Shown: positions 1,850 through 63,637 of the stretch, in pieces
Position numbering within the stretch: the first letter of the stretch is position 1
Layout of the letters: the number at the start of each line of letters is the position of its first letter
NCBI RefSeq assembly: GCF_009834535.1
Contig: NC_045717.1
Coordinates: forward strand, 17,732,001-17,796,000
Source: Camelus ferus
Taxonomy: Eukaryota
Length of the DNA stretch: 64,000 nucleotides
Direction of reading: 5' to 3'
The notes under the pieces: model-generated
Seen by the model: the letters and a program-made list of their open reading frames with translations, nothing else
Told to the model about the DNA's origin: nothing
The model's database searches: none
Made by a program: the position numbers and the translations under genes

Positions 1850-2075
1850 GGTGCAGTTCTCACCTGGGGGCGATTTTGGGGGTGATTTTGTCCCTAAGGG
1901 GATATTTGGCCATGTCTGGAGACATTTATGTCATGGCTAGTGTGGGGAGGCTCTTGGAATCTAGTGGGTAGAGGGCAAAGAAGCTGTTAAACATCCAGCA
2001 GTGTTCAGACAGCCCCCACTGCAAAGGGTGAGCCAACCCAAATGTCAACACTGACAAGGTTGAGAAAACTTATTC
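1850..2075. mobile_element. MER20 DNA transposon remnant (paralogues about 43550-43750 and 61995-62195)
   Basis: ggcgattttg...atttggccatgtctggagacattt...gctgttaaacatcc...aatgtcaacactgacaaggttgagaa, typical of MER20. Confidence 0.75.
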
Positions 2076-2179
2076 TATATAAACTAACATGAATATCACT
2101 CCAAAATGATGAGTAAAAAAGCCAAGCTGCAGAAAGGTACCTACAGAATAATCAAATTGTGTTAAATCACGTGGTATGA

Positions 2180-2770
2180 AAAGCAGCCTGGTGGTTCATC
2201 AAAAAATTGAATATAGAATTACTATATGACTAAGGACTTTCCTGGGAATGTACCCCAAAGAAATTAAAAGAATTCAAAAAAAATCCTTGTACACAGATAT
2301 CCATGGCAACACTACTTACGTGGCCAGAAGGTGGAAATAACCCAAATGCCCGTCAGTGGGTGAACAAGTAAACAAAACATGGTCCAGCCATAAAATGACA
2401 TATTAACTCAGTTATTAAAAGGAATGAAGCACTGATAACATGCTATCTGACAGGTGAATCTCAAAAATACTATGCTGAGTGAAAAAAGCCAGACCTCATA
2501 GGTCTACAAATTGTATGATTCCATTTTTATGGGATGTCCAGATCAGGCAAACCCACAGGGGCAGAAAGCAGATAAGTGATTGCCAGGGGCTGAGGGAGGA
2601 AGACCGCTAATGGGATGGGATCTCCCATTTTTGGGGGGTGATGAAAATGTTCTGGAACTAGGAAGAGACGGTGGTTGAATAACATTGTGAATGTGCTAAA
2701 TGCCACTGAATTGTTCACTTTAAAGTGGTTAATTTTAAGTTATGTGAATTTCACCTCAAAAATAAAACAA
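2180..2770 (+). mobile_element. L1MB-type 3' end (paralogues about 43860-44440 + and 61310-61890 -)
   Basis: aattgaatatagaattactatatgac...aatgtgctaaatgccactgaattgttcacttt...atgtgaatttcacctcaaaaataaaa. Confidence 0.75.
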
Positions 2771-3149
2771 AACAAGCAAGCAAAAAGCACAACAAAGCTC
2801 TACAGCAGTATCTTATTTGATGTGTTTGTGTCTGTTCACACCCTCCTGCATACAAAGTTCTGCAAGGATGCCCATCAAATTCACCATCATGATCCCATAG
2901 CTGGCCATTGCAAGACTTTTAGCCTTATTTGTAGCATCTCAATGATTTAATAGGAAGAAACATATTTATGTATTGATGTAAAAAAATTTTAAACACATGT
3001 AATTAGACAAATGATCCGATCAGGGAAGAAAGGAGATGGAGAGGCATGTGGGGCAGCCTCCTCAGCCCCAGCAGGCAATGGCAGGACTGCTTTCCTGCCA
3101 AAGTCAGGAACCAGGGCCTCAAATGCCAAATTTGTGAAGCATTAAACTC

Positions 3150-3270
3150 TGCTCAAGCCCCTGAGAAGCCCAGGTAATTGACTCACACCTGGCAGGCAGG
3201 GAGGGATGGAAGGAAAGTGAGAAAGTCTCCCTGAGGTTGTCCAACACCTTGCAGGGTCCCCAGGGGTCCC
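3150..3270 (+). promoter_or_regulatory. Putative OR promoter of OR10H1-like gene A: homeodomain site plus O/E (EBF) site
   Basis: TAATTG at 3175-3180 and TCCCCAGGGG at 3257-3266, both conserved in the paralogous copies (44845-44850/44926-44935 and 60902-60907/60817-60826). HD plus O/E sites are the established OR promoter architecture. Confidence 0.5.
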
Positions 3271-3509
3271 AGCATCCTTGTAGCAGAGGGAAGATGCAGA
3301 GGCAGTGGGACCACAGCAAGAGAAGGCAGCAGGCAGGGAGCAGAGGCAACATAAATAATGATGGTGAGGTTCAGGTAGCCCTTCCCTCTCTACCCTGCTG
3401 GCACACTCAGGGTGGCAGGCTCTTGCCTTGCAGCCCTCACCTGCAAGGAAACATCAAACCAGGACCTCCAACTGGAGTGAGGCAGAAGGAGGTGCAGAGC
3501 CTGGAGCCC

Positions 3510-3518
3510 CAGGTGAGT
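3510..3518 (+). other. Splice donor of a putative 5'UTR exon of OR10H1-like gene A (CAG|GTGAGT)
   Basis: Perfect donor consensus with GT at 3513-3514, identical in copies B (GT 45172-45173) and C (GT 60594-60593, minus). Would pair with the acceptor ...cctcacttcag| at 7463. Confidence 0.55.
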
Positions 3519-4084
3519 CATCGTCCCTCCCTCCCACTTGACCAGGAGAGACCTGGGGAACCAGCAACTGCCACAGACTCAGAGAAGCCACCCTGTCTAT
3601 ATAAATCCTTGGGCAATTCGAGTCTACGGGATGGGAGCAGAAGGCAGGGCTCCACTTCCTATCTTCAAGGTGATGGGATGATTGCTTCTCAGGACAGGTG
3701 AAGAAACTGAGGTGCAGAGAGGGGAGCTACTGCTCTCAGTTACCAGAACACCTGCTTGCGTTTTAACTTCTCTCCCCTCTCCGTCCTGGCCAGAAAAACA
3801 GTGGTAAAAGGATTGAGGGGAGGCAGAGAAAAGAGACAAGAGGATTTAGGACTGAGAGGCTCCAGTCACCCACCAAGGGTGTAATGTATCCGGGGGCACC
3901 AGGGCGGACAGGTGTGGTGACGGTAAGGAGTTAGGAATGAAAATGGGGAGAGAAAAGGGAGGCGATGGTGGCAGAGATGGGAGGGAGGATGCAGAAGGGC
4001 ATCCTAAAGAACTCCACTGAGAAGAGAGAGCCAGGATGGGGGCAGATGGGTAAGGCAAGATGGAGGCAACACAGACCTCGCTTG

Positions 4085-4290
4085 TGGTACTCAACCAGGG
4101 GCAGTTCTGCTCCCTAGGGGACATGAGACAGTATGTGAGGATACTTTTGATTGTCACAATTGGGAGAAGCTACCTGCACGTAGTGGGCGACAAGGATGCT
4201 GCTCAACATCTTATACTGCACAGGACAGCCCACAACCACAAAAATTATAAGCCCCCAAAGTCCCTAAGGCTGAGGTTGGAAAACCCTGCT
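4085..4290. mobile_element. MER20 remnant (paralogues about 45790-45990 and 59820-60030)
   Basis: ctcaaccaggggcagttctgctccctaggggacat...cttttgattgtcacaat...gatgctgctcaacatctta...ctgaggttggaaaacc. Confidence 0.7.
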
Positions 4291-4544
4291 GCAGGGGTAT
4301 ACGAGAACAAGATTTGTTCACAGGTGGCCTTGGCCCCTGTGTTCCTTGGTGGAGAGCTGGCCCCGCTGTGGATTCCACTAAGTGTCAGACAGCCAGATCG
4401 CACTCTCTCTGGGGCTGTTCAAACGCTTGCAGAGGAAACCACTACGTATTCTGGTGGATCAGTGCCAGGTTTCAGTCCATTTCATCCTGAACCCACACCC
4501 TCCATGGTCCTAAGGCTCTTTGTTTACTTTAAAAAATAGACAGA

Positions 4545-4935
4545 CTTTACTTTTCAGAGCTTTAGGTTTACTGAAAATTGAGCAGATAGCGCAGAGGATT
4601 TCCACATATCCTCTCCCTCCCCGACCACAGCTTCCCCTGTTATCAACCTTCTGCATTCCAGAGGTAACTGTGCTACAGTTGCTGGACTTACATTGACATG
4701 TTCTTATTAACCACAGCCCACAGTTTACATGAGGGTTCACTTTTAGTGCTGTACATCCTATGAATTTTGACAAACGCACAATGTCATGTAGCCACCATTA
4801 TAGTATCACACAGAATTGTTTCCACCCCTTAAAAAAACCCGAGTTCCACCTATTCATCTTTCCCTCTCTCTCTTCCCGAGGTCCTGACAACCACCAATCT
4901 TTTTACTGACTTTACAGTTTTGCCTTTTTCCAGAA
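4545..4935 (-). mobile_element. L1MC-type 3' end (paralogues about 46280-46650 and 59170-59560)
   Basis: The reverse strand reads aaccctcatgtaaactgtggg...gtggaaatcctctg...ctgctcaattttcagtaaacctaaagct, typical of L1MC 3' ends. Confidence 0.7.
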
Positions 4936-6039
4936 TGAACAGACACCAGTCTTAGCTGCCTCTGCATCCCCCTCATCCCAGAAGATGGATACGCAGCCCT
5001 GGACCACCTCCCCCAGACATGGTGAGCTCTTATCTCCTCACAGTGCCTCTCCCTTTCTTTATTCATGGCTGTGGAGTTTTGTGCTCTTAATTAATACAGG
5101 GAGGGAGTGTGTGGATGGTCTGGTGTGGTGAAGCTAACAGCTCTTTGGTCCTGGGAGTGGCTCTGACATTCATTAACAGCCACCAGTAAGTGGTGAGTGT
5201 GACAGAGAGGTTAGGAAATGGTAGGCTTTTGGGTCATTCAGGTGCAGGTTCAGATCCTGGCTCCCCCACTCAGAAGCCACGGTCCTTTGGGCAAGTAATG
5301 TGTCTTGTGTGGGATGCAGCTGCCACTTCTGTAAAACAGGGATCAGAGTAGTGCCTCACAATATTGGGGTAAATACTTAACAGGAAACATATGAGCACAG
5401 GTGCCATGTCCAATAGAGGGTAGCTGTTCTCATCCAGAACTCAAAATCCAGTGCCAGAGATAGTTGCATCTCCAACATGACACATTATTACATTGGTCAT
5501 GAAAAAGTTAAGATGCTAGGTCCTTCAAACTCACTCAGAAGTTTGGAAGAACACAGGAATGAGTAACTAAATCTATTTGGGGAAGAGATGTCCAGAAAGG
5601 CTGCACTGTGCAGGTGACATTTAAATTGAGTCTTAAAGATGAACAGGTGTTTGCCAGTTGGAGAAGGGAAGAACTGAGATCCTGTCAGACAGAACATGCT
5701 GACTGTACTCTCCAGATCATGTCTCACCCATTCAATCTTTTCTTGGAGGTTCTTGTTTCTACATCATTGACTTTGACTCACCCTCTGCAATATCTCAGAG
5801 TATCTGGACTGAGTGGGGCTTTTGGAGCTATCACCCTGGAAACCTAGGGCAGGTACTGACCCAGAAGTGAGGGAAAGAAACAAGGGACTCCAAAGGAGGG
5901 AGGCCAAGAACTCTGGAAACTGATGATATTTGGGGAATGCAGCTTCCACTCACCAAACGTCTGGTTGTGTCTTGTTCTCAAACTGTCGGGGCTTGATCTA
6001 GGACAAGAGCCCACTTAATAGGGTATTCATTACATTTTC

Positions 6040-6490
6040 CTATTTTTTTCTTTACTGTGGTAAAATACACAGAACATAAAATTGACTATTTTCTCCTTCT
6101 TACAACAATTCAGTGACATTAAATACATTCAATGTTCTGCAACCCCCACCTCCACCTAGTTCCAGAACCTTCTCAGCACATCTAAAGGAAACCCAACACC
6201 TATTAGCAGTCACTCCCTGTCTCCCCTTTCCCCGGCACCTGGAAACCACTGCTATGCTTTAAACTCCTGCATGAATGTTCATAGCAGCGCGATTCAGAAG
6301 AGTGAAAAATGAAAACAACCTCAATGTCTATCAGTGGGTGAATAGATAAAGAAAATGTGGTCTAACCATAAAGGAACATTGATTGGCTGTGAAAAGGAAT
6401 GACGTTCTCATACACACTACGACATGGAAGAGCCTCGAAAACATCATGCTGAGTGAAAGAAGCCAGACCCCAAAGGCCACAGATTAGTGG
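6040..6490. mobile_element. L1MB-type fragment with internal inversion (paralogues about 47925-48430 and 57355-57805)
   Basis: 6040-6255 is an L1MB 3' end on the minus strand. 6256-6490 is the adjacent more-5' L1MB part on the plus strand. Both meet at the ...agtggtt... motif. Confidence 0.6.
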
Positions 6491-7474
6491 TTTACTGCCT
6501 TTTAAGCTTACCTAATAAAAATCACTTAAAAACAGTTATTTATAAAGAAAGATTGAAATCTCATTAAACAAAAGTTACTGACTGAGCACAGACCATGTGC
6601 ATTTGCTCACTTAGTGTATTGATTTCATTATCACAGGCCGTGCCTACTGTTTTCCAGATCACAGTCCCAGAATAGCTCATTTAGTTCCCACAACAGTTCT
6701 CTGAGGCAGGTAGAGAGAAATGGAGGTGCAGAGTGGTGAAGAAAGTGGCTCAGGTTTACACAGTGGGCAGAGCAGGAATTTGCACCCAGTGGACTGACTC
6801 CCACATCCCTTTGTCTGATGGCTATGTTGCATTGCCTCAGGAGGGGCAGGTGGGCCTCATGGGAGCTGGAAAATAACCAGAACATCATCTCTACATCATC
6901 CTTCCTTGAATTTCTTGCATGGATGACTCCAGAGGAAGAATCTGCTTGATTCATATTAAGTTAGAGGTGCACACTACAAAGTGTTGTAGACCCCGGGTAG
7001 GGACGTCTTGTGGTATCTGAAGCTCTGGGAGGATCAGGATTTATCAGAAGGGAGGAGAGGAGAAGAGTAGCAATAGCTGGAAACTCAGTGAAGGAACATT
7101 TTCATGTTTGGAAGCAAAATCCCTAGAAGGATAGAAGGGTAGAGTCTTTGGGGACAGCCAGCCATGGGTTCAGGTTTCGGATCTGCCATTTTGACAACTT
7201 CACCTTGAACAAGCTGCTTGGCCTCTCTGCACCCCAATATTCTTAATAAGTATTCTAAAAATTCTCAAAACAAGGTGAAAAAAACAGCACCTCCCCCACT
7301 ATATTGATGAGAGGATTAAATCATAGGAGGCACAGAGTAAGAACTCAACTGATGTTACCTGTCATTTACCAGGAGCAGCCCCTTGGGCAGGGCCAGCAGT
7401 GGTGGAAGCTGATGGCCGCCCTCCACCCAGGAGCTGAGCTCTCCATGTCACACCTCACTTCAGGCACAGCCTCC

Positions 7475-8422
7475 ATGCAGGGAGCCAACCTCTCAGCAGT
7501 GACTGAATTCATCCTCATCGGCTTCTCCACCTTCCCCCACCTCCAGCTGATGTTCTTCCTGCTCTTCCTGCTCATGTACCTGTTCACGCTGCTGGGGAAC
7601 GTGCTCATCATGGCCACCATCTGGAGCGAGCGCAGCCTCCACACCCCCATGTACCTCTTCCTCTGCGCCCTCTCCATCTCTGAGGTCTTCTACACTTTTG
7701 CTGTCATCCCACGCATGCTGGCCGACCTGCTCTCCACTGATCGCTACATCTCCTTCANNNNNNNNNNNNNNNNNNNNNNNNNNNNNNNNNNNNNNNNNNN
7801 NNNNNNNNNNNNNNNNNNNNNNNNNNNNNNNNNNNNNNNNNNNNNNNNNNNNNNNNNNNNNNNNNNNNNNNNNNNNNNNNNNNNNNNNNNNNNCTGTGCC
7901 TGTCTGGTGGCCTGGTCCTGGGTTGGAGGCTCAGTCATGGGGCTGGTGGTGACATCAGCCATTTTCCAGCTCACCTTCTGTGGCTCTAATGTGATCCATT
8001 ATTTTGGCTGCCACGTGCTACCTCTCCTGAAGTTGGCCTGTGGGGACAATGTCTCCACAGTGGCCATGGGCGTGGACCTAGTGTGTATCACGGCCTTGCT
8101 GGGCTGCTGTCTCCTCATCCTCCTCTCTTACGCCTTCATTGTGGCCACCATCTTGAGGATCCCCTCTGCTGAGGGCCGGCACAAGGCCTTCTCCACCTGT
8201 GCGTCCCACCTCACCGTGGTGGTCGTGCACTATAGCTTCGCCTCCATCATCTACCTCAAGCCCAAGATTCCCCAGTCTCTGGAAGGAGACACGCTCATGG
8301 GCATCACCTACACGGTCCTCACTCCCTTCCTCAGCCCCATCATCTTCAGTCTCAGGAACAAGGAGCTGAAGAATGCCATGAAGAAGACCTTTCTCAGCAT
8401 GCTTTACCCAGAAAAAATGTGA
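7475..8422 (+). CDS. OR10H1: Olfactory receptor, subfamily 10H, OR10H1-like (gene A), 315 aa; codons about 95-140 lie in a 136-N gap
   Basis: MQGANLSAVTEFILIGFS, LHTPMYLFL, KAFSTCASHL, PFLSPIIFSLRNKEL and C-terminal LYPEK as in human OR10H1. ATG is 11 nt after the acceptor cctcacttcag|. The gap length (136) equals the homologous length in gene B, so the frame is kept. The 372-aa ORF in the track runs upstream into the probable intron. Confidence 0.85.
   Translation: MQGANLSAVTEFILIGFSTFPHLQLMFFLLFLLMYLFTLLGNVLIMATIWSERSLHTPMYLFLCALSISEVFYTFAVIPRMLADLLSTDRYISFXXXXXXXXXXXXXXXXXXXXXXXXXXXXXXXXXXXXXXXXXXXXXXCACLVAWSWVGGSVMGLVVTSAIFQLTFCGSNVIHYFGCHVLPLLKLACGDNVSTVAMGVDLVCITALLGCCLLILLSYAFIVATILRIPSAEGRHKAFSTCASHLTVVVVHYSFASIIYLKPKIPQSLEGDTLMGITYTVLTPFLSPIIFSLRNKELKNAMKKTFLSMLYPEKM
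7758..7893. other. Assembly gap or mask (136 N) inside TM3 of OR gene A
   Basis: Run of N seen directly. Confidence 0.99.
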
Positions 8423-9229
8423 TTACTGGGAGGAATTCCTTGGACATAGCTAAACTGGGTTACCAGGTGCTACCATTAAAGATGGCCCCCTGTAAACATG
8501 TAATACCATATTTGTCTGATGCTTTAAATTTTATAAGGACCCTTGTCTGCAACATCCAAAGGTGCCCACAATGGTTAAGCAGCATCATGCCTGTACTCAG
8601 GGTGGAAAGCTGTATGAGGTGATCGATCACTCAGAGAAAATACGATTCGATGATTCCTATCTGTTGCAGGACACTTTGTCAGGTAGCGGTAAAGCCAGAA
8701 TCTGTTCTTCTTCTGCCGGAAGCAGGGGTGGTGTGATTACTCCCATCCCAGAAACCCACACTGCAAAGAGAAATGGAACACAGCAGACCTTCCCCCTGTG
8801 CTAGGCAGCACCGGGTAGCTACAACACAGGTTTGGCAAGGCTGTAGGAGACTAACCCAGGTTACAGGGGAGGAGAGCAAAGCACCGTAAATCCTAGCATT
8901 GCTCATCTCTGTAATAATCAGCCTCAGAAAAAGTTGAGAAAACCTCCACATTTTCAGTGTGAATCTTGAGCAGCTGCAGAGAGTCACTGGGAAGTCGCTA
9001 TTGTTAGGTCAAGGAAAGAAGTCCCACCGTGGAAATGGCCTGCTGTGTCAGAGTGACTCGGCTCATGGGCCAGCAGTGAACTCTTTGGTCTCACTAATGA
9101 GTGCAGAACCCAGAATGAAGGTGTATCCCATGGTCACACTGATTCAATGCTCCCCCTTGGTACGAGGGGGGATTTAAGGTTCATCATATTTCATAGTGCT
9201 TATAATCTTTTGAAAATACGTGTACTTGA

Positions 9230-9655
9230 GACAATGACAAATATGGTGTGATATCCCTTAAAAGTGGGATCAGAGAAAGATAAACTCATAAAAACAGATT
9301 GCAATGGTAGTTACCAGAGACTGAGGGGTGGGGGAACTGGGGAGATTTTTTTTAAGGGCACAAACTTTTAACCGTAAGCTCAACCAGTAGATGAGTAGAC
9401 CTGGAGGTCTGATGCACAGCCTATAGACAATAAGACTGTATTATAAACTTCAGAGTTGCTAAGAGACTAGATCTTAATTGTTCCCACCACAAGAAAGATG
9501 TGAAGGTTATGTGACATGATAGAGGTGTTGCTAATACTAACTGGTAGCTAACACTGTAGTGGTCATCAAACTGCAAATTATAAATGTATCACACCAGCAT
9601 TTTATATATATTAAAGTTACACATTGGTATATGTCAGTTATAACTCAATTAAAAA
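9230..9655 (+). mobile_element. L1MA-type 3' end (mirror copy about 54190-54620 -)
   Basis: gacaaatatggtgtgatatccctt...ggtagttaccagagactg...tagatcttaattgttcccaccac...gtcagttataactcaattaaaaa. Confidence 0.75.
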
Positions 9656-10835
9656 GTTTTCTTGACAAATGTATATTGTTTCAGAATGTGGATTCATCCA
9701 TTTATTTTAAAATAGCAATTTATAAAACTTAATGGGCACTAGTTGATGGTGGTACTGTTGTGTACAAAACGAACATAATTAAAACACACAAGCAATAAAT
9801 TAATCACCCTAACTCTTTCACAGTGAGCCACAGTAATGAGAAAGTAATGTTTTACCTAATGTTGTGTGTAGGAGAGGGGGCAAGGGATTTGCAATCAGCT
9901 AGACACAGCCTTTAAGCATGCTTTGTGTTCTTACTTAAGCGATGATCCCTCTTCTTTTTTCTCTCCCTCTCCTGTCTCTCTCTTTCTCACTATCTTTCCT
10001 TTCTCTCACTCACTCTCTATTTCACTCCATCACCCTCTCCAGCCCCATTTCTAACTCCCTTACATTTCTTCTCTTTCCTCTTCCTCCTATGCAAATAGAC
10101 CTATTATAGACAGCCTCCTTCTACTTTCCTTTCCCAGATGTTTCCCCATTTCTTACTTTATCCAATTTACTTTACAGATCAATTTTAAGGATTTCTGTCT
10201 CACTAGCTCATTATCTTTCAGTCTTTCTCTCTCCATTTGCATTCTAACATCCTTCACTCAACTCCACTCAGCATAGAAAACCCCGCTTTGGTTCTATCCC
10301 TTCCAGAGGCAATTAGGAACTGTAAATAATAAACCATTATCTTGAAACAAATAATTTTCTTATTTTACATTTATTATAACTAAGATGATAATAATTAAAA
10401 AAATCGGACACTGTGTTTCATATATAAAGCTACTCAGTGTTAGGGTGGTATTTATTATTTTTAATGTTATTCTTTTTATTCTTATATGGGGAAGAGGGAA
10501 ATAAAATATACTCTTGCTTGTTTATTTGGAAAGAAACATGGGCATCAGTGCCTAGACACATCCATCTGGGGCTTCCCACCTGCCTATAGACAGATAGCAA
10601 TTCTAAGGCACAAATAATAAGATGAAGTTCACCACACCAGGTATAAACAAGAGCTCATGATGGTTCAGGTCTATGCAAAAAAGAGATAAACATGTTGAGG
10701 ATAAAGAAATAGCTAGTATGCATCAAACTCCTATGGGGTGTGGATAGATTCACACACCTGAATCTTTACAACAGTTTTGAGACAGATTTATTATCCTAGG
10801 CTTTCTTTCAAATTTCTTCATCACCATACTGGCCA

Positions 10836-11786
10836 TCAGGAGCTTAGAGGAGAGAATTTTCTGTGGAAATTTCTCTTTATGGCATTCTTCAGCTCCTTAT
10901 TCCTGAGGCTGAAAATGATTGGGCTGAGAAAGGGGGTGAAGACTGTATAGGTGGTGGCCATCAGAGTGTTACTGTCCATGGAACGGGGGCCCTTGGGCTT
11001 GAGGTAGATGATGGAGGCAAAACCGTAGTGCACAATCACTATGGTGAGGTGGGATACACATGTGGAGAAGGTCTTGTGCCGGCCCTCAGCTGAGGGGATC
11101 CTCAAGATAGCAGCCACGATGAAGACATAGGAGAGGACAATGAGGAATAAACACCCCAGTAGGGCTGTGACACAAACCAGGATGACACCCATGGTGACAG
11201 ATGATGTCTCCTTCCCACAGGCCAACTTCAAGAGGGCAAGCACATGACAACCAAAATGGTGGATCTCATTAGACCCACAGAAGGTGAGATGAAAAACTAT
11301 CAGTGTCAACATCATCCCCATGACTGAGCCACCAGCCCAGGACCAGGACACGAGACGGGCACAGTCACGTGTGCTCATGAGCACGTTGTAGTGCAGAGGG
11401 TGGCAGATGGCCACGTAGCGGTCATAGCCCATGATCATGAGCAGGAAGGAGTGGGTGTAGCCAAACGTGAAGGAGAAGAACATCTGGCTGGCACAGGCCA
11501 CGAAGGAGATGGAGCGGTGGGTGGAGAGCATGTCGACCAGCATTTGAGGGGTGACGGCAACAGTGAACAGAATCTCGGAGATGGAGAGGGCGCACAGGAA
11601 GAGGTACATGGGGGTGTGGAGGCTGTGCTCGCTCCAGATGGTGGCCATGATGAGCAGGTTGCCCAGGAGTGTGAACAGGTACATGAGCAGGTACAGCAGG
11701 AAGAAGGCAGGCAGGAGATGCTGAGGGAAGGTGGAGAAGCCGATGAGGATGAATTCAGACACTGTGCTATAGTTCTGACCAGACAA
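10836..11786 (-). CDS. OR10H4: Olfactory receptor OR10H3/OR10H4-like (copy 1), intact 316-codon frame beginning with TTG, no ATG at the canonical start
   Basis: (L)SGQNYSTVSEFILIGFSTFPQHLLP, MGYDRYVAICHPLHY, KTFSTCVSHL, SLRNKELKNAIKRNFHRKFSPLSS match human OR10H3/H4. The first codon is TTG (plus-strand caa at 11784-11786). Main exon probably starts at 11797. Confidence 0.88.
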   Translation of the reverse strand: MSGQNYSTVSEFILIGFSTFPQHLLPAFFLLYLLMYLFTLLGNLLIMATIWSEHSLHTPMYLFLCALSISEILFTVAVTPQMLVDMLSTHRSISFVACASQMFFSFTFGYTHSFLLMIMGYDRYVAICHPLHYNVLMSTRDCARLVSWSWAGGSVMGMMLTLIVFHLTFCGSNEIHHFGCHVLALLKLACGKETSSVTMGVILVCVTALLGCLFLIVLSYVFIVAAILRIPSAEGRHKTFSTCVSHLTIVIVHYGFASIIYLKPKGPRSMDSNTLMATTYTVFTPFLSPIIFSLRNKELKNAIKRNFHRKFSPLSS

Positions 11787-13189
11787 GGATGCTGCATCTG
11801 GTGAGATCAGGAACAGAATGAAGGCAGAGTGGTTAAAACAGAGGTTCTAACATAGATTAAACAGCAGTTGAAGAAGTCTATACTATATAACTATTTGCTT
11901 AACTTGTCTGAGTCAAAATCTTCATCAGTAAGATGGATTAAATCATAGCAGTTCCTACCATTCAGCATTGTGATAAAGATAAAGTGGATCAGTATATTAA
12001 GTGCTTAAAACATAATTTGACCACTGGTTTCTTATTAACAGTGTCAAAAATAAAGAAATGCTCCCATTTTTGAAACCACTAAAGATAGACATGCAAGATA
12101 AAGGTCACATGCTATTGAACAGTGTGCCTGTTCTAGAAAATGTATTTGGATCTTGGGGTTAAAAAATTCCTTCAGTGTCCTGTGTTTTAAGTGATTGTTG
12201 AACCCATTACATGTATTTTATTGGTAATCATTTATGTCATCTTATTTCATATTTGATTTATTTATAGTAAAGGAACTGAACAGAAAGTTTCAAAGTAAAA
12301 GGATGGACAAATATATGCTAGGCAAATATGTACAAAAGGAAGGCTGAAGCAGCAATCTTCAAAACAGAAAAAAATGAGATTGAAAAAAACAACAATTACA
12401 ATAACTGTATTGCCGTATTCCACTAAAAGGACCAGTGTTCCTGGAGAGATGGTCTGGGCAAGGAGCACGCCTTGTACATCTTGTGCCAGAGTGAAATAAA
12501 ACTTTCACTGTGAAAGGTTAATGTTAAAAGCATGCAGCAACCGGATTGAAAACGTGTCCATTGGCTTAAGCTGATCATCAAAGCAAATGATCGTTGTACG
12601 GATGATGGAGGAGAAAAGTAAATGACACCACAAGGAAGCAACCAGACAAATCCAAAGGTGGAACATTCCACAGAACAATTGGTTTAGTCTCAACAATGAG
12701 ACAACGTCATGAAAAGAATGACCAGAATTCCAAGCGACATAACAACCGGATGCAATATAGGGTACCAGATTGAATCTTGATTTAGATAAACCAGCTATAA
12801 AGTATTGTTAAAGGAATAGAGACAACATTGTTTATGATATGAATGAATGATGAGGCATGAATAATATTAAGGGGTTCTTATTTATTCAGTTATTAGTTTT
12901 ATGTGTGATCTTGTTATTTTGGCTGGGAAGGAAAATATTCTTAGTTTAAGTGCATCCCTGAAATGTACAAATCACACATGTACGTGTGCCAAGGGACAAA
13001 GAGGATTATTTCATACAGGTTAGAAGAACATCATAGTTTCCATCATAAATACGATTAATCAATGTAACAATATACTCTGGCATATTAAGTGACAAGTAAT
13101 CGGTACAATTCTAGTGAAAGAGATGTAAAATAAAAATAGTTAATGAATAATAGACAGAATTAAAAATTTAGCTAGAAATTTAAATACAT

Positions 13190-13999: not shown

Positions 14000-15600
14000 T
14001 GGAGCTCAGAATTCAACTTATGTAATAGTAATTACTACAATGCAATTAATAATATTCAAACATTAACTGACAAATATTTTTAGACTCCTCAAACAACAGA
14101 AATATTTTTTAAGCACTCAGAAGACTCTCATAAAAACTGACCTGACATTAGATATAAAATAATCTTCCATCAATTCCAAAGTATAAATATTATATATATT
14201 ATAATGCACTAAAATTACAATTCAGTGGATAAGGAATAGCTTTTCAAACCCCACATATTTAAAAGCAAAATAATTTAGTAAATAAACTTTTCTTTCAATG
14301 GTTAATCATGAAATAAATTAAGAAATATTTCTAATTAAATAATTCAAGCATCTCATGTTAGAAGATCAGGCTAAAATAACATTGAAGGGAAATACACAAG
14401 TTTAAATATATTTATCAAGCAATTTTATCCAGAAAAAAATCATGCTTAAAAAAAGTTAAGATTAGGTTATCGAAAAAGATTAATAAGATAGAGAGAAATA
14501 AGGAGAAGATACCAATAACCAAATATGAAATTAAAATTGGGGAATAAATGCAACAATAATGGGTATTTGAAATTAATTTAAAAATAGTAAGAAAATACAT
14601 TGACAAATATGAAACTGTAGATGAAATGAATGAATTCTTAGAAGAATATAAAATTCCAAAACTGGCACAAGAAAAAATAGGGGTCCCAAATACACAAATA
14701 CGTTATTTTTTAATTGAAAGTTTTAGTTAAAGACCTTCCTTCTCTATAATCATCAGCCCCAGTGAGTTTGCAAGTGAGCTCTCCTAAACGTCTAAGGAAT
14801 AGCTGCTGAGTATCTTACACATGTTGTTCAACAAACAGAAAAATACATGAAGTTGCCCAGCTCATTTCATTAAATTGATGTAATCTTGATTCTAACACCA
14901 GGTAAGAATATTTGTAAGAAAAAAATAATTATGGGTTCGTTTGATCTACACATGCAGGTTTTAAAAATCTGTAATAAGACATAACCTAGTAAAATTCTAT
15001 GGTAATTAAAAACAGTGCATTGTGATCACGTAGTTTTGGTTTATCCCATGAATGACAAGGATGGTTTAGCATCAGAAAACCTGTCATGTGAATCCTTACA
15101 GGAACACACTAAAAAAGAAAAATCATATACGCATTTCCTCCAAGGTAGGAATAATTTTCTAAAATTCAACTCCTACTCATGATTTTCAAAAAAGCCTCTT
15201 TGTAACATGCCGGGAAGGCAACTTTCTTAGCTAGTTAAAGAGCATATACCACAAAACTGGCAAGTATTATACTAATTGGGAAACTAGATGCATTATTTTA
15301 GGATCAGGAACAAGCCAAGGATACTCACTGCCTCTGCTGTTCTTTAACACGGAACTGAAAGTCATGAGCAGTGCTAAGGAAAGAAAAAGAAAGAACATGT
15401 GTAAAGATTGGAAGGGAAGAGAAAATGATCATCCACCCAGAAAAGATAAAAGAATTAGACGAATAAACTACAACCATAAGAGAGCGTAAGGCTGCCGAAT
15501 GTAAGATCAACTTCTGAAAGTCACAGTATTTCTCATAGTATTGCACCAGTAATAATCATTCAGAGTATATAACTGGAGTTAAAATTAGGACCCCCAATAG
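14000..15600 (+). mobile_element. Highly degenerate old L1 ORF2 remnant (homologous about 19630-22000 and 28050-29880)
   Basis: AT-rich sequence with recognisable L1 ORF2 motifs (aaattcaactcctactcatgatt, ggaaggcaactttcttag, aggaacaagccaaggatactcactg). Confidence 0.55.
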
Positions 15601-16328: not shown

Positions 16329-16371
16329 CCTCTCCCTCCTGGTCCCCCTCACCCTGGCCTGGCTCTTCCAT
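16329..16371 (-). CDS. Candidate upstream coding mini-exon for OR10H4-like copy 1 (MEEPGQGEGDQEGE plus phase-1 G)
   Basis: ATG GAA GAG ... GAG G|GTAGGA. The 43 nt give phase 1, matching the acceptor ctcaccag|AT GCA GCA TCC TTG at 11797. Conserved in four copies. Splicing is inferred, not observed. Confidence 0.5.
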
Positions 16372-17020
16372 GAAGTGGCCAGCAGAGGAGAGCAGAAGAA
16401 ACGCTCCTGCTTGATGCTGTCAGCAGTACCCACAGGTGGGTGTGGGGTGAAACCTCCTAAAACAGATACAGTCTGCTTTATCCCTGCTGTATCCTTCCCT
16501 GCTGGCTGCTCCCAAGGGCATCTTCAAGATGCTAACCTAAAAGATCCGTCCTCAGGGTCTAGAGAAGCTGGGAAGGACCTCAAGGGGCTTTCAGGGACCT
16601 GCTGCCTCTAAACCCTCCCCCAGCTATCCACACAGAAAAAGACTGTTGCTGTCGCTCTTCGCCCAGAGAGACTCAAGCCCATGCTGAGGGCTGCAGAGCT
16701 CCCAGTTACTGGAGAGACTGAGTTGGACACAGATGCCCTCATCACCTTGGGGTCAAGGCAGGGTCAGAGGGAAGGTGAGAGCTGGAGGGGTCCCAAGTGG
16801 GAACTGAGGGCTCTTCCCTGGGTTGAGAGCAGCTGGAGGACTTCCCAGACAAGGATAATTTGGAGCTGGGTCTTAGAGACTGGTTTCTTTTGGGCAATAT
16901 AAGTGTTCAGTGTCTTCTGGCCAATTGGATAGCCTCACCTCTATTCCCAATCAAATTCTACCCTAACTCCCATGGTCCTGGTGATCCAGCCAGACAGTCT
17001 GACATGCACACATGCCTCCC

Positions 17021-18209: not shown

Positions 18210-19160
18210 TTAGTAGCTTAGGGGACAGAATGTTCTGTAGAAGCTTCTCTTTATGGAATTCTTCAGCTCCTTATTCCTGAGGCTGAAAATGATTGGGCTA
18301 AGAAAGGGGGTGAAGACTGTATAGGTGGTGGCCATCAGAGTGTTACTGTCCATGGAACGGGGGCCCTTGGGCTTGAGGTAGATGATGGAGGCAAAACCAT
18401 AGTGCACAATCACTATGGTGAGGTGGGATACACATGTGGAGAAGGTCTTGTGCCGGCCCTCAGCTGAGGGGATCCTCAAGATGGCGGCCACGATGAAGAC
18501 ATAGGAGAGGACGATGAGGAATAAACACCCCAGTAGGGCTGTGACACAAACCAGGATCACACTCATGGTGACAGATGATGTCTCCTTCCCACAGGCCAAC
18601 TTCAAGAGGGCAAGCACATGACAGGCAAAATGGTGGATCTCATTAGACCCACAGAAGGTGAGATGAAAAACTGTCAATGTCAACATCATTCCCACGACTG
18701 AGCCACCAGCCCAGGACCAGGACACAAGACGAGCACAACCACCAGGGCTCATGAGCATGTTGTAGCGCAGAGGGTGGCAGATGGCCACGTAGCGGTCATA
18801 GCCCATGATCATGAGCAGGAAGGAGTGGGTGAAACCAAACGTGAAGGAGAAGAACATCTGGCTGGCACAGGCAGTGAAGGAGATGGAGTGGTGGATGGAG
18901 AGCATGTCGACCAGCATTCGAGGGGTGACGGCAACAGTGAACAGAATCTCGGAGATGGAGAGGGCGCACAGGAAGAGGTACATGGGGGTGTGGAGGCTGT
19001 GCTCGCTCCAGATGGTGGCCATGATGAGCAGGTTGCCCAGGAGTGTGAACAGGTACATGAGCAGGTACAGCAGGAAGAAGGCAGGCAGGAGATGCTGAGG
19101 GAAGGTGGAGAAGCCGATGAGGATGAATTCAGACACTGTGCTATAGTTCTGACCAGACAA
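18210..19160 (-). CDS. OR10H4: Olfactory receptor OR10H3/OR10H4-like (copy 2), intact 316-codon frame beginning with TTG
   Basis: Same motifs as copy 1 (MGYDRYVAICHPLRY, KTFSTCVSHL, SLRNKEL). TTG at 19160-19158. Acceptor ctcaccag| before 19171. Confidence 0.88.
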   Translation of the reverse strand: MSGQNYSTVSEFILIGFSTFPQHLLPAFFLLYLLMYLFTLLGNLLIMATIWSEHSLHTPMYLFLCALSISEILFTVAVTPRMLVDMLSIHHSISFTACASQMFFSFTFGFTHSFLLMIMGYDRYVAICHPLRYNMLMSPGGCARLVSWSWAGGSVVGMMLTLTVFHLTFCGSNEIHHFACHVLALLKLACGKETSSVTMSVILVCVTALLGCLFLIVLSYVFIVAAILRIPSAEGRHKTFSTCVSHLTIVIVHYGFASIIYLKPKGPRSMDSNTLMATTYTVFTPFLSPIIFSLRNKELKNSIKRSFYRTFCPLSY

Positions 19161-19459
19161 GGATGCTGCATCTGGTGAGATCAGAAATAGGATGAAGTCA
19201 CTGCAGTTAAATCAGAGGCTCTAACATAGATTAAATGGCAATTAAAGACCTCCATACTATATAACTATTTGCTTAACTTGTCTGAGTCTCACAATCTTCA
19301 TCAGTGAGATGGAATAAATGATAATACTTCTTACCAGAATAAGCATATGAAATCTGCTCACTTCATTTCATTAGCTTAATGCAATCTTGATTTTAAACCA
19401 GGTAAATTGTTAATAAGAAAAGAAAATTACGGGCCCACCATTTCATCTGTCCGTGCAGA

Positions 19460-21454: not shown

Positions 21455-23054
21455 AGAATATGTGCTACAAAACTAGCAGGTAGCTTACTAATGGGGAACT
21501 TTTGATGCATTATTTTAGGATCAAGACTCCAAGGTTACTTACTGTCTAGGCTGTTCTTTAAAACTGAACTGAAAGCCATGAGCAGTGCTCTAAGGAAAGG
21601 AAAAGAGAAGGTATATAAGGTTGGAAGGGAAGAAACATGGTCACGTACCTAGAGAGGGTGAAAGAATCAAGATGTAATATGTTAGAACAAAAAGAAGCAC
21701 AAAGCTGCGGAAGGCAAACCGACTTCCCCAAAACATAGTATTTCTCATGGTATTACACCAGCAATTATCTCTCAAAACATAGAACTGAAGTTAAGCAGGC
21801 GAAGACTCTTAAGAGTGACACAGACTATGAAGTAAAAGCCCTCAACCATTTGCTCTTAGGATCCTCTTACAATAAAACACTGAGTTCCCAAAGGGCTTTT
21901 GTTTGACGGGGGTCAGAACTATCAATCTTTCCCATTTTAGAAATCGAACCTGAGAATCTTTTAAAGGATTTGTATTAGTGTATCTAAAAGAACAACAATG
22001 AATCTATTACATTTTAATATAGTGACATTTTAAGGAAAGTAATCACATTTTCAAATAATAAGTAGTGATAATAGTGGTCCTGTTCTACATTTTCGCAAGT
22101 ACGTTCCTCGTCTGGCCTGGTGGTAGACAACTTAATGCTGTGTCTGATTCTTTGTCAGTCCGTGGCAGTATGTCGTTTTACTTAACGCATGTGACAAAAA
22201 TATATCCTCACGTGTACTGCCAAGGTAGGGACCTGGTGGACCCTCAGAAATGGTCTCAGGGAATCCCAGGGGTCCTCATATTATATTTTGAAAACCTTTG
22301 TTATAAAATATCTAGGATTCAACAACAAACATGTAATACCTCCAAAGACAAAAATGTTAGCCAATGATAAAAATGTAGAGGATGATCTGAATACATGTGG
22401 AAACTGTTTACTTTCCTGGATGGGATGATCTAATATGATAATGGTGTCACTTCTTCCCCCAAATTATACCATCAGTACAATTGCATTTAGGACTCCAGTG
22501 AGTGGACTGTAAATTTAGTAACTGTCCTAAATTTCCTCTGAAAAAAAGTCAGTGCACAATGATACTCATCTTATCATTATTATTGTGAGCAGGACAGATT
22601 TGTCTTCCCAGGGATTATGGCACATTCTAGAGTCATAGTCATTTTTAAAAATGTGAACCAGGAACAGACATACACATCCATTAAACTGACTGGATATCTC
22701 CGAAAATATCCCATTATTATTCATAATGTAATATATGATAAAGGTGGCAGCACAAATAAAGGAAAAGACGCATTGTTTCCCAGTTTGTGGTAGGAAAACT
22801 GTTCATTTTATGAAGCAAAGTAAATCCGAATTTCTGCCAAAGACCACATGCAAAGGTGGAATCCAGATGGATTCAAGACATAAATGTGAAACAAAGTATA
22901 AAGTTAACAGGAGAAAGTGAAAGAGAATTACTTTGTGGATCTTAGTAGTGGAGAAGGACTTCCTAAACCAAACTTCTAAAGCATAAACGTTAAGCTGATT
23001 TTTAAAAGACATGAAAACGTCAACGTTAAGAATTTCTGTTCCTGCTAACTACTA

Positions 23055-24160: not shown

Positions 24161-24203
24161 CCTCTCTGTCCTGGTTCCCCTCTCCCTGGCCTGCCTCTTC
24201 CAT
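24161..24203 (-). CDS. Candidate upstream coding mini-exon for OR10H4-like copy 2 (MEEAGQGEGNQDRE plus phase-1 G)
   Basis: ATG at 24203, 43 nt, then GTAGGA at 24160. Same phase as copy 1. Confidence 0.5.
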
Positions 24204-25331
24204 GAAGTGCCCAGCAGGAAAGGGCAGAAGAAGCTCTCCTGCTGGATGCTGTCAGCGGTACCCACAGGCAAGTGTGCGATTGGACCTAGGGGCTCCTAGA
24301 ACTCACCCTGTGTGCTTTATCCCTGCTGCGGGCTTCCAGCAGGCTGCTCCCTAGGGCCTCTCCAAGACAGCAACCTAGAATATCTGTCCTCAGGGTCTGG
24401 AGAGGCTGGGAGGGACCTCAAGGGTCCTTTGGGAACTTGCAGCCTCTACTCCTTCCTCCAACTATCCACACACAACAAAGGTCTCTGGTGTCACCTCTTC
24501 CCAGAAAGAACCCAGCCCTTGCTGAAGTCTGAGGAGCTCCCAGTCTAGGGGGTGGGGTTGGAGGACAGGGCTTGAAATAGATGCCCTTAGTCCCTTGGGG
24601 TGTAGGGATAAGGTCAGAGGGAATGCAGGAGCTGGGGGAGCCTAGAGTGAGATTCCAGGGCTGGATGGCTTTTCAGAATAAGAGTCATTTGGGACTGGGT
24701 CTTGGGGACTGGTTTCTAATGTGCAATATGTCTTCTGGCCAAACTAGACAGCCCCACCTCTCTTCCCAAATTCTGCTCTATTCGTATGGTCCTGGTAATC
24801 CAAGGAGACAGTCTGACATTTGCATATGCCTCCCTGTGATAAGATGTAACATAAAACAAACATAAAAAAATTTGGTCTTTCGGTGGTGTCCTTGGTTCCT
24901 GACCCTCTGAAAAGAGTGTCTTTTTATGCTAATGAGATGACTGGTGACTATGGGTTTATCTTTATAAAACCACTTCTGCCTCCAACTCAGATATTTGACC
25001 TCACCTTTGGGTTAATAGTTGACATGCCACAAAGGGCTCCCTTCCTGGATCCTCAGTGACATATATTCTCAAACACCAGTGTGGGAGTCAGATAGACATA
25101 AACCTCCCTGTGACTCCCTCCATTCACATTTGTGTGACCTCTGCCAACACTTCTCATCTTCATATGAAGGGACCATCTCTGACCTCTCTCTGTTCCATAT
25201 TGAGATAGCACTCTGCCTTTCAACTCACTCCCCAAACAGCTGCAACTTTAACACAGTAATAAAAATGGATGTTTTATTGAAAATTATGTGTGGGAAAAAT
25301 GAAAAGGGATTTCAATAAGATGTCAGCAGCA

Positions 25332-26397: not shown

Positions 26398-27348
26398 TCA
26401 GGAGCTTGAGGGACAGAATGTTCTGTGGAAGGTTCTCTTCATGGCATTCTTCAGCTCCTTATTCCTGAGGCTGAAGATGATCGGGCTAAGAAAGGGGGTG
26501 AAGACTGTATAGGTGGTGGCCATCAGAGTGTTACTGTCCATGGAACGGGAGCCCTTGGGCTTGAGGTAGATGATGGAGGCAAAACCGTAGTGCACAATCA
26601 CTATGGTGAGGTGGGACACACATGTGGAGAAGGTCTTGTGCCGGCCCTCAGCTGAGGGGATCCTCAAGATGGCGGCCACGATGAAGACATAGGAGAGGAC
26701 GATGAGGAATAAGCACCCCATCAGGGCTGTGACACAAACCAGGATGACACCCATGGTGACATACAATGTCTCCTTCTCACAGGCCAACTTCAAGAGAGAA
26801 AGCACATGGCAGACAAAGTGGTGGATCTCATTAGACCCACAGAAGGTGAGATGAAAAACTATCAGTGTCAACATCATCCCCATGACTGAGCCACCAGCCC
26901 AGGACCAGGACACGAGACGGGCACAGTCACGTGTGCTCATGAGCACGTTGTAGTGCAGAGGGTGGCAGATGGCCACGTAGCGGTCATAGCCCATGATCAT
27001 GAGCAGGAAGGAGTGGGTGAAGCCAAACGTGAAGGAGAAGAACATCTGGCTGGCACAGGCCACGAAGGAGATGGAGCGGTGGGTGGAGAGCATGTCGACC
27101 AGCATTCGAGGGGTGACAGCAACAGTGAACAGAATCTCGGAGATGGAGAGGGCGCACAGGAAGAGGTACATGGGCGTGTGGAGGCTGCGCTCCCTCCAGA
27201 TGGTGGCCATGATGAGCAGGTTGCCCAGGAGTGTGAACAGGTACATGAGCAGGTACAGCAGGAAGAAGGCAGGCAGGAGATGCTGAGGGAAGGTGGAGAA
27301 GCCGATGAGGATGAATTCAGACACTGTGCTATAGTTCTGACCAGACAA
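26398..27348 (-). CDS. OR10H4: Olfactory receptor OR10H3/OR10H4-like (copy 3), intact 316-codon frame beginning with TTG
   Basis: Same motifs. LLKLACEKET resembles OR10H4 LKLACENKT. TTG at 27348-27346. Acceptor ctcaccag| before 27359. Confidence 0.88.
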   Translation of the reverse strand: MSGQNYSTVSEFILIGFSTFPQHLLPAFFLLYLLMYLFTLLGNLLIMATIWRERSLHTPMYLFLCALSISEILFTVAVTPRMLVDMLSTHRSISFVACASQMFFSFTFGFTHSFLLMIMGYDRYVAICHPLHYNVLMSTRDCARLVSWSWAGGSVMGMMLTLIVFHLTFCGSNEIHHFVCHVLSLLKLACEKETLYVTMGVILVCVTALMGCLFLIVLSYVFIVAAILRIPSAEGRHKTFSTCVSHLTIVIVHYGFASIIYLKPKGSRSMDSNTLMATTYTVFTPFLSPIIFSLRNKELKNAMKRTFHRTFCPSSS

Positions 27349-30300
27349 GGATGCTGCATCTGGTGAGATCAGAAATAGGATGAAGTCACTGCAGTTAAAT
27401 CAGAGGCTCTAACATAGATTAAATGGCAATTAAAGACCTCCATACTATATGATCTGGCTATACAAATGTGCCCATAGGCCACAGCTGAGCACCAAAGTGT
27501 GATAATATGCAGGATGGAGGAACAAGCTAAATGACACCATGAAGAAGCAATTAGAAAATCCAGAAGGCGAAATGTTCTATAGAACAACTGGTCTGGTCTC
27601 AGCAAGTCAGGATGAAGAAGAGGGTGAAGAGGAATTCAAGGGACATAACAACCATGTGCAATATTGGGTATCAGATATTTAGATAAGCTAGTTGTAAGGT
27701 AGTTTTAAGGAAACAGATAAGATTTTGATTGTGGTATGAGTGAATGATGAGTTAAAATAATATGAAGAGATTATTCTTAATCTAGTTGTTAATTTTAAGT
27801 GTGATCTTATTATTTTGGCTTTGAAGGAAAATATTACTAGTTTAAATGCATATTGAAATTTAAAATGTACACACACATGCACACAACAAGAGACAAAGAA
27901 GACCATTTTATGAAGATTATTGGAACATTGTAGAACCTGTATGAATATAATTAACCTATAGAACAATATACCCTAGATTATTAGTAATAAATAAAGAACA
28001 CCACTTCTGTGAAACAGATATGAGATAGGAATAGCTAAATCAATACTAGATAAACTGGCTAAAAACTTGAAATTACAAATTTTAACAGAATTCAGAAATG
28101 TAATTTGGGAATTATCAGTTATAATGCAATTAATAATATTCAGACATTAGCTCCTGGATATAATTGGGCTCCTCTCCAGAGATCAAACATTTTTTTTTTC
28201 AACCAGAAAGAGGGGTTTAACAAAATTTGACCTTGTTTTGGACTCAGAGAAATTCCCCATCCACTTCGAAGTGTATGTGTGTGTATATATATATATTTAT
28301 AAATATATATATAATATATATATATTATATAGATTACAGTATACAAAAGTTGGAAATCAATAGAGAAAGAATTCCAAATTCCATAAGTTGGAAACTCAAT
28401 ATAGTGCTAAATAATACTTTATTTCAAGAGTAAATCTTTGACACAGCATTGTAAAATGAGTATTACTCATTAAAAAAAGTTTTAAAAAAGATTAAATCAT
28501 AAAATGAATAAAGAAATACTTATAATTAAATCATTTAAGCATCAAATGTCAAGTTTTTAAGCTAAAACAGTTCTATGTTGGGGAACATACTGCTTTAAAT
28601 ATATATATCAAGAAATTTTACCCAGAAAAATTGTGCTTAATACAACAAAAATCAGCAATTATAAAAAATTAATAAGATAGAAACAAGGACAAGATGCCAA
28701 GAAAATATAACATTAAAACATGGAAACAATTAGAGAAATAAATGATATTTTTAAATTACTAAAAAGAGTAAGAAAAATATAAATGAAGAAATATGAAACA
28801 CTAAGTGAAATGACTAAATCATCAGAAACATGTAAAATTTCATAACTGGTAAAGGAACAAATAGAAACCCTGGATATTTTAAAAAGTTTTAGAGAAATTG
28901 AAGTGGTTAAAGACCTTCTCTTTTATAATCATCAGCCCCAGTGAATTTGTGGTGAGTGCTCCTAAATTTGTAACGAACAGTTGATGAATATCTTACACAT
29001 GTTCTTCAAAAACAAAAAACAGAAAAATATCTGAAACTGCCCAACTCATTTCACTGAGGTAATGCAGTCTTGGTATTAAAACTAGGTAAGAAAAGACAAA
29101 TTATGGGCTTTACCTATCCATGCAGATTTTAAAATCCATTAAAAGGCATCGTCTAGTCAAATAAAATGGTTACAATAGTATTTTATGATCAAGTGGTGTT
29201 TGTTTAGCCCAAGAGTGACAAGACGGGGCAGCATCAGATAACCTGTCATGTGATTCATCACATCAACAAACTAACCAAGAAAGATCATAGAATTCTTTTG
29301 ATCAAGGAAAGAAGATATTTTCCAAAATTCAACTACTTTTTATGATTTTTTAAATTTTATGTAATGTGACATATAACACTGTGTCAGTTTTAGGTATACA
29401 AGACAATGATTTCATATAGGTACACCTATTTATGATTTTTAAAAAAGCCTTTTTGCAACATGAAATCAAAGGGGACTTTCTTAGATACTCAAAGAATATA
29501 TACTACAAAACCAGCACATAGTATCTGAGAGGGGAAGTGTACTCGCATTATTTTACGATTAGGAACAAACCAAGGTTACTCACTGTCTCTGCTGTTCTTT
29601 GACATGGAGCTGGAAGTCATGAGCGGTGCTACAAGGAAAGAAAAGGACTAAGTTATATAAGGATTGGAAGGGAAGAGACTGGAGCATCTACCTAGAAAGA
29701 TAAAAGAATCAAGATGTGATATGTCAGAACAAGAGGGCACAGTACTGTAGAAGGCAGGGTCAGCCTCTGAAACTCATAGTATTTCTCACAGTATTTCTCA
29801 CACTATTACACCAGTAATAATCACTCAAAATACAGAATTTAAGTACAAGTAAGATAACATTTCCAATAATGGCCCAAACTATAAAGAAACAGCTCTCAAG
29901 CATTTTGGCTTCAGGATCATTTTACACTCAAAAACTTTTGAGCCCCCTACAGGGCTTTTGTTTGAGCGGGTTTGTAACTATCACTTTTTTAAAATCATAT
30001 TAGAAATTAAAACTGAGGTTCTTTAAAAGTATTTAGTAATTGGTATAATTAAAAGAATAATAATAAACCTATTACATATTCATATTAGAAACACATTTAT
30101 ATGGGAGTAACTACATTTTCAGAAAACATTGAGTGAGAAGAGTGGCCTTGTCTTACATTTTCACAAATATGCCTGATGTTTGCCTCGATAGGAGATAAAC
30201 TAAGCTCATACCTGCTTCTTCATTTAGTCAGTGGTGTTATGTTGCTTTAACTGAAGTGCATGATGAAAACACATCCACACGTGTAACCGGAAAAGTAAGG

Positions 30301-33745: not shown

Positions 33746-33788
33746 CCTCTCTCTCCTGGTGCTCCCCTGCCTGGGGTGCCTCTTCCAT
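33746..33788 (-). CDS. Candidate upstream coding mini-exon for OR10H4-like copy 3 (MEEAPQAGEHQERE plus phase-1 G)
   Basis: ATG at 33788, 43 nt, then GTAGGA at 33745. Same phase. Confidence 0.5.
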
Positions 33789-63594: not shown

Positions 63595-63637
63595 ATGGAA
63601 GAGGCACCCCAGGCAGGGGAGCACCAGGAGAGAGAGG
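63595..63637 (+). CDS. Fourth copy of the candidate OR10H4-type coding mini-exon (MEEAPQAGEHQERE plus G), pointing out of the window
   Basis: Identical to 33746-33788 in reverse. GTAGGA follows at 63638. Confidence 0.4.

Follow-up and report, generated by a model that had tools for sequence, protein, structure and literature searches.

How can an olfactory receptor gene be translated once the start codon of its receptor exon has gone? Three OR10H3/4-like genes raise this question on the minus strand of the window analysed here, a stretch of 64,000 nucleotides of Camelus ferus DNA that spans an OR10H cluster. In all three copies, the main receptor exon carries TTG where relatives carry ATG, no ATG precedes TM1 in that exon alone, and only the joining of an upstream exon to the main exon yields an intact ORF for the full-length receptor. 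The first-pass annotation had proposed that a 43-nt block with its own ATG, several kilobases upstream, supplies the missing start. The general idea of a start codon in an upstream exon is almost certainly right for these intact ATG-less genes; the choice of exon is probably wrong, because a 45-nt exon between the block and the receptor exon appears to serve instead. With the block placed in exon 1, the 45-nt segment as exon 2, and the receptor exon as exon 3, the three camel genes are probably obligate split-CDS receptors of three exons in which translation starts in exon 2 and exon 1 is essentially untranslated.

Receptor exons without a start codon

Exon 3 of each copy starts after ...ctcaccag/ (slashes mark splice junctions throughout), with the TTG 11 nt further on, and the sequence agrees with the acceptors given in the first-pass annotation (Table 1). 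The receptor frame of copy 1 is 100% identical to the nearest public protein, an OR10H3-like protein of Camelus bactrianus, and Pfam 7tm_4 is present on homologues of the camel receptor exons. The ATG-less frames are intact in all species examined, those of 316 codons being found in camel (three copies), alpaca, yak, sheep, whale, donkey, and dingo, and pairwise dN/dS for eight such frames plus lion ranges from 0.18 to 0.41. The receptor frames are under purifying selection and are functional, non-pseudogene ORFs.

The gene units are tandem duplicates with a flank identity of 72–78%, joined by a fourth, partial unit in inverted orientation; at this divergence the paralogous units are old. The three receptor exons differ by a dS of only 0.08–0.10, about equal to that between camel and alpaca, and copies 2 and 3 do not differ at all over the 140 nt that surround their acceptors. 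Because the exons are so much more alike than their flanks, gene conversion among the coding exons is suggested. The window additionally contains a large inverted segmental duplication (1252-9815 versus 62794-54024, and 33384-34589 versus 64000-62794, at 88–97% identity); the fourth exon 1 copy falls within it, as do two OR10H1-like genes, at 7304-8422 (+) and 55422-56495 (-). In these two genes and in a third OR10H1-like gene at 49286-50359 (+), a predicted extension of about 40 codons, MPPVIYQEQ..., continues the ORF in frame ahead of the MQGANLS start that is usual, in the same exon. Between the OR10H units, at 40593-41528 (+), lies an intact 311-aa receptor of another type (MGNHTQVSEFILLGLS...) with an ordinary ATG.

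Table 1. Positions in the window of the exons and promoter elements discussed in the text.
Feature	Position	Strand	Remarks
TATA-like box, copy 1	16476..16490	-	ACAGCAGGGATAAAG; upstream of exon 1
TATA-like box, copy 2	24315-24329	-	equivalent of copy 1 box
TATA-like box, copy 3	33900-33914	-	equivalent of copy 1 box
TATA-like box, fourth copy	63469-63483	+	equivalent of copy 1 box
Putative exon 1, copy 1	16329..16450	-	5' end placed about 31 nt after the box
43-nt ATG block, copy 1	16371-16329	-	ATG..G, then donor AGG/GTAGGA
43-nt ATG block, copy 2	24161..24203	-	
43-nt ATG block, copy 3	33746..33788	-	
43-nt ATG block, fourth copy	63595..63637	+	inverted duplicate of copy 3; receptor exon would fall past the window end
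Candidate exon 2, copy 1	15329..15373	-	45 nt; ATG at 15365; encodes MTFSSVLKNSRG + first base of next codon
Candidate exon 2, copy 2	21543..21587	-	ATG at 21579; encodes MAFSSVLKNSLD
Candidate exon 2, copy 3	29584..29628	-	ATG at 29620; encodes MTSSSMSKNSRD
Acceptor of exon 3, copy 1	11798	-	cag/, then 11 conserved nt ATGCAGCATCC; TTG at 11786
Exon 3 (main receptor exon), copy 1	10836..11797	-	to stop; 316 codons; stop codon 10838-10836
Exon 3, copy 2	18210..19171	-	TTG at 19160
Exon 3, copy 3	26398..27359	-	TTG at 27348

A candidate start exon and the block upstream of it

A translated search of the window located, between block and receptor exon in each copy, a short segment with a strong pyrimidine tract, an AG acceptor, and a GTGAGT or GTAAGT donor, splice sites being judged against the MAG/GTRAGT consensus. 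In copy 1, where exon 1 lies about 1 kb further upstream, it reads ccttag/CACTGCTC ATG ACT TTC AGT TCC GTG TTA AAG AAC AGC AGA GGC A/GTGAGT, flanked by tctttctttttctttccttag before the acceptor and by GTGAGTAT from the donor on. Copy 2 has a tandem acceptor, TAG/AG/, and its exon is 45 nt long or, counted from 21589, 47 nt. From ATG to donor there are 37 nt, which gives phase 1 and matches the phase of the receptor-exon acceptor. The computed join of exons 2 and 3 is 332 aa long in all three copies and begins M-T-F-S-S-V-L-K-N-S-R-G-N-A-A-S-L-S-G-Q-N-Y-S...; the introns that it spans measure 3531, 2371, and 2224 bp in copies 1, 2, and 3. A further tblastn match, MTFSYTLRHGR at 6399 (+) and 57451 (-) near the OR10H1-like genes, was rejected as an exon 2 homologue for lack of alignment to exon 2; judged by eye, it is presumably interspersed-repeat sequence.

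The three exons were aligned across camel and 11 other mammals (yak, cattle, bison, sheep, minke whale, alpaca, donkey, dingo, lion, pangolin, and slow loris), with 21 sequences for exon 1, 20 for exon 2, and 21 for exon 3. The exon 3 acceptor and the 11 nt behind it are free of indels in 21 of 21 sequences, as expected if these nucleotides are translated. In camelids, donkey, whale, and one bison copy, the old start codon that follows reads TTG; bovids and sheep have TCG or TCA, dingo has GTG, and lion, pangolin, and loris have ATG. Exon 2, for which all 12 species are represented, is indel-free in 19 of its 20 sequences, and every one of the 17 that belong to genes without an exon 3 ATG has a GTRAGT donor and an in-frame ATG as its first and/or sixth codon. 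Initiator Met and splice junction are thereby conserved across mammals, as expected of a split-CDS receptor gene under the criteria of Barnes et al. 2020. The sole frameshifted exon 2, with a 1-nt deletion and a donor weakened to GTGGGC, is that of pangolin (locus L009, 9263-9413), where the exon 3 ATG is present; such a pattern is expected if exon 2 is dispensable only where that ATG remains. The acceptor AG of exon 2 is absent at the aligned site in loris and in one dingo gene (dingo_a). Variable sites of exon 2 number 12, 9, and 6 of the 13, 12, and 12 sites at codon positions 1, 2, and 3, with no enrichment of third positions; constraint would seem to spare the residues of the peptide, which is not strongly conserved, and to act instead on start codon, exon length, and splice sites. 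Exon 2 and the receptor exon are separated by an intron of just about 70–130 nt in one dingo gene (L002, 9915-10163) and in lion (L004, 9760-9977), as against 2–3.5 kb in camel.

A separate feature of exon 3 concerns its first three bases (11797-11795, 19171-19169, and 27359-27357), which spell an ATG outside the receptor frame, the start of a +1 frame of 120 codons. This out-of-frame ATG is kept in 19 of the 21 sequences, from 12 species, including those with a canonical ATG 11 nt downstream. It would be expected to handicap that canonical ATG, and its retention fits translation that enters from exon 2.

Among the 120 best homologues in public protein models, N-termini are highly varied, and one motif recurs in distant species. 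Models spliced from exon 2 begin MTFSSMLRNNRDN-AASLSGQNYS in dromedary (P0001), MTFSSMLKNSKDS-AASSSGQNYS in yak (P0023), MLKNSRNTD-AASVAGQNYS in dingo (P0034), MLKNSRVN-AVSMPGQNYS in macaque (P0056), MISSSMLKNSRVGT-APMPSQNYS in slow loris (P0070), and MTFSSTLKNSRFNT-VSTLGQNYS in owl monkey (P0073). The 305-aa models of baboon and gelada begin MLKNSRD and then continue inside the receptor; they start at the sixth-codon Met of exon 2, in keeping with the split isoform of human OR10H4 in the curation of Barnes et al. 2020. An upstream start exon occurs from primates to Laurasiatheria, and many lineages lack the main-exon ATG, so that the switch "in this lineage" put forward in the first-pass annotation is too narrow a description. 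Public models of camel and alpaca have unrelated patch starts (MLND..., MCGMFAQ..., MMVNLMD..., MTKDKVD...) or an internal Met (282 aa). The NCBI model of copy 1 (P0002) starts at a 10-nt piece, ATGCTGAATG/GT, at 11968-11959 (-), about 160 nt upstream of the acceptor; copies 2 and 3 have no MLN match in the equivalent position nearby, and this mini-exon is treated as a gene-prediction patch. Further camel models have other unrelated start pieces, for example at 33217-33176 (-) and 44558 (-)/61194 (+), and public start exons are inconsistent.

The 43-nt block itself, with its ATG and G/GTAGGA donor, is present in copies 1–3 exactly as first described, and a fourth copy had been missed. It encodes MEEPGQGEGDQEGE, MEEAGQGEGNQDRE, and MEEAPQAGEHQERE in copies 1–3; the second donor noted for copy 1, CAGG/GTGAGG, occurs in that copy alone. 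A GCAGGGATAAAG box lies about 105–110 nt upstream of the block ATG, and exon 1 as modelled from 31 nt past this box contains no earlier ATG, in agreement with the claim that the block holds the first AUG after the box. In the window, the TATA-like box has 4 matches against 0.15 expected by chance, and box and block motifs occur 4 times each against 0.01–0.2 expected. From TATA spacing, transcription of copy 1 would start at about 16450. About 45 nt upstream of the box is an CCCTNGGGAGCAGCC element that we take to resemble an O/E site. The GGGATAAAGCA box is conserved in alpaca, sheep, donkey, lion, one cattle paralogue (cattle_B), one bison copy (bison_m), and slow loris, and a variant of it occurs in whale, pangolin, yak, and dingo. 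Box and AGG/GTAGG donor are in this sense conserved from camel to loris, as a promoter with a non-coding first exon would be.

Conservation of the block as coding sequence is another matter. The 300–500 nt around it align among the camel copies at 84% mean column identity, gap-free through the block, with variable sites at 4, 5, and 3 of the 15, 14, and 14 sites at codon positions 1–3, nearly all of which change the peptide; the codon-position distribution of these sites in the camel copies gives no coding signature. Because the four copies share ancestry within duplicated units, the ATG, the 43 nt, and the GT that they have in common are no more than descent would give. Across the 21 exon 1 sequences, an ATG with 43 nt is found only in camel (four copies), alpaca (two), donkey_a, and cattle_B. 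Yak and its cattle orthologue (cattle_C), from two independent assemblies, have the ATG with 42 nt and a GTTGGA donor, and their frame stops at TCA TGA inside exon 2. In 11 of the 21 the ATG is replaced or deleted: TTG stands in its place in the two bison copies, in whale, and in sheep, where 12 nt are inserted as well; it is CTG in dingo (three copies) and lion, CCG in pangolin, and ATA in donkey_b, and it is deleted in loris. The block measures 42, 44, 55, or 25 nt in 7 of 21 sequences. The first-pass annotation itself named the lack of the ATG or of the phase-1 donor in TTG orthologues as a ground for refutation, and the ATG or its phase does fail in 8 of 10 non-camelid genes without an exon 3 ATG (sheep, whale, two of bison, two of dingo, yak, and cattle_C); the 21 sequences give the block no conserved combination of initiator and junction such as a split receptor gene would be expected to have. 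By this comparison it is exon 2, and not the block, that goes with ATG-less receptor exons, and the block is most likely a promoter-proximal, essentially untranslated first exon.

Where translation would begin

In the proposed gene structure, exon 1 would follow the TATA-like GGGATAAAGCA box, end at the AGG/GTAGGA donor, and be in essence 5' untranslated. Exon 2 would be a 45-nt cassette that carries the evolutionarily conserved start codon (MTFSSVLKNSRG in copy 1), and splicing to exon 3 would match its 37 nt of phase 1 to the 11 nt between acceptor and old start. The old exon 3 ATG would then be a mere internal Met of a longer frame and, for that reason, could be lost, as it is to TTG in camel. 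The exon 1 ATG would be a lineage-restricted upstream ATG, in frame by chance in camelids and not what rescues the genes, although it may add a variable acidic extension, giving 349 aa through exon 2 or 334 aa with exon 2 skipped. Both ATGs have a pyrimidine at -3, which makes leaky scanning past the exon 1 ATG plausible. Against a start in exon 2 stands the exon 1 AUG itself, which copies 1 and 3 have in frame, as do donkey and one cattle paralogue, each with 43 nt. Transcription from upstream of 16371 would make this AUG the first of the message, and by scanning it should start some protein.

The same argument speaks for a camelid long form in which exons 1, 2, and 3 are joined and translation proceeds mainly from the exon 1 AUG. 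Scanning ribosomes as a rule start at the first AUG; the 45-nt exon 2 preserves phase, and it interrupts the frame from 16371 neither in copy 1 nor in copy 3, nor in copy 2 with the GAG/ acceptor (the second AG of TAG/AG/), nor, by alignment, in donkey_a. The copy 1 join reads MEEPGQGEGDQEGE-ALL-MTFSSVLKNSRG-N-AAS-LSGQNYS..., 349 aa with a 33-aa extension, and the exon 2 ATG becomes an internal Met. As the principal product this form is nonetheless unlikely: the exon 1 ATG has U at -3, a weak context that favours leaky scanning, the first AG of copy 2 yields a 24-codon uORF in which the frame fails, the frame fails as well in yak and cattle_C, and most other lineages have no exon 1 ATG. Somewhat more room is left, tentatively, for camelids and perhaps equids to have three-exon coding receptors with alternative N-termini, whose lineage-specific acidic extension might be 33 residues (349 aa) or, with exon 2 skipped, 18 residues (334 aa).

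The model of the first-pass annotation, in which the block splices straight to the receptor exon, skips exon 2, and gives a main product of 334 aa (MEE...E-D-A-A-S-L-S-G-Q-N-Y), agrees with the computed join, whose frame is uninterrupted in each of the three copies; the camelid copies, donkey_a, and cattle_B retain ATG, 43 nt, and GT, and the ATG is the first after the TATA-like box. It is still very unlikely to describe the main transcript, for every copy has, between block and receptor exon, an exon whose acceptor and donor are better, the block is without a coding signature and loses its ATG or phase in the eight genes named above, whose main exons are also ATG-less, and no MEE start is found among the 120 nearest public protein models. 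Most improbable of all is that the genes are recent pseudogenes or that initiation occurs, without AUG, at the TTG itself. The canonical position does lack an ATG, and NCBI models of alpaca and camel do fall back on an internal Met or patch exons, but the intact 316-codon frames with their dN/dS values and the age of the paralogous units, seen in their flanks, speak against decay. For the TTG, the TCG or TCA of bovids and sheep differs from ATG at two positions, so that initiation at the old start codon is not a general solution. A start in exon 2 thus remains the preferred reading.

Relation to known split receptor genes

For the camel and alpaca genes, the value of a start in exon 2 lies mainly in annotation, since comparison across species indicates the same start exon for all of them. 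Pseudogene counts that rely on single-exon ORFs would miss receptor genes of this sort. The camel genes would fall in a known kind, their arrangement having already been curated for human OR10H4 by Barnes et al. 2020 (BMC Genomics 21:196, PMC7055050), whose set of split receptor genes comprises 13 from human and 41 from mouse. The same study found that the 5' UTRs of protein-coding receptors contain in-frame upstream ATGs in 13.6% of cases in human and 21.5% in mouse (PMC7055050). The camel ATG at 16371 resembles these in that only some lineages have it in frame, the others having it out of frame or not at all; it differs in reaching the receptor frame across one or two introns, with a phase-preserving exon between. 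Another parallel is offered by the first class of split receptor genes in that study, for example mouse Olfr1174-ps, Olfr1175-ps, and Olfr1177-ps, whose main exons lack a conserved initiator ATG and looked pseudogenic, whose upstream exon restores the frame, and whose intron falls in the extracellular N-terminal tail. The mouse junctions are backed by RNA-seq and single-cell expression, whereas the camel genes are known from sequence and comparison.

Human OR10H4, of the same subfamily, is the nearest known case. Its split transcript, ENST00000641275, encodes 305 aa with an intron after aa 7 that spans 3367 bp, and an additional single-exon isoform exists (PMC7055050, Supplementary File 3). 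By arithmetic on the coordinates of that supplement (transcript start 15944299, single-exon CDS 15949008), transcription starts about 1.4 kb upstream of the split-exon ATG, which implies a further upstream exon, as in the camel layout. In both species the start would lie in a short upstream exon, at a distance of 3367 bp in human as compared with 3531, 2371, and 2224 bp in camel. Judged from its 305 aa, the split form of human OR10H4 is spliced at an internal acceptor, with the loss of about 18 N-terminal codons, whereas the camel genes have an ordinary acceptor 11 nt before the old start; and where baboon and gelada start at the second Met of exon 2, the first Met (MTFSS...) is the sole one in camel copies 1 and 2. 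The human split form is optional, with a single-exon ATG present, whereas the main-exon ATG of camel is gone. Across the OR10H3/4 clade, the canonical ATG has been replaced by TTG, TCG, TCA, or GTG according to lineage while the upstream ATG has always been kept, so that an isoform optional in human would be obligatory in many other mammals, a modest evolutionary point.
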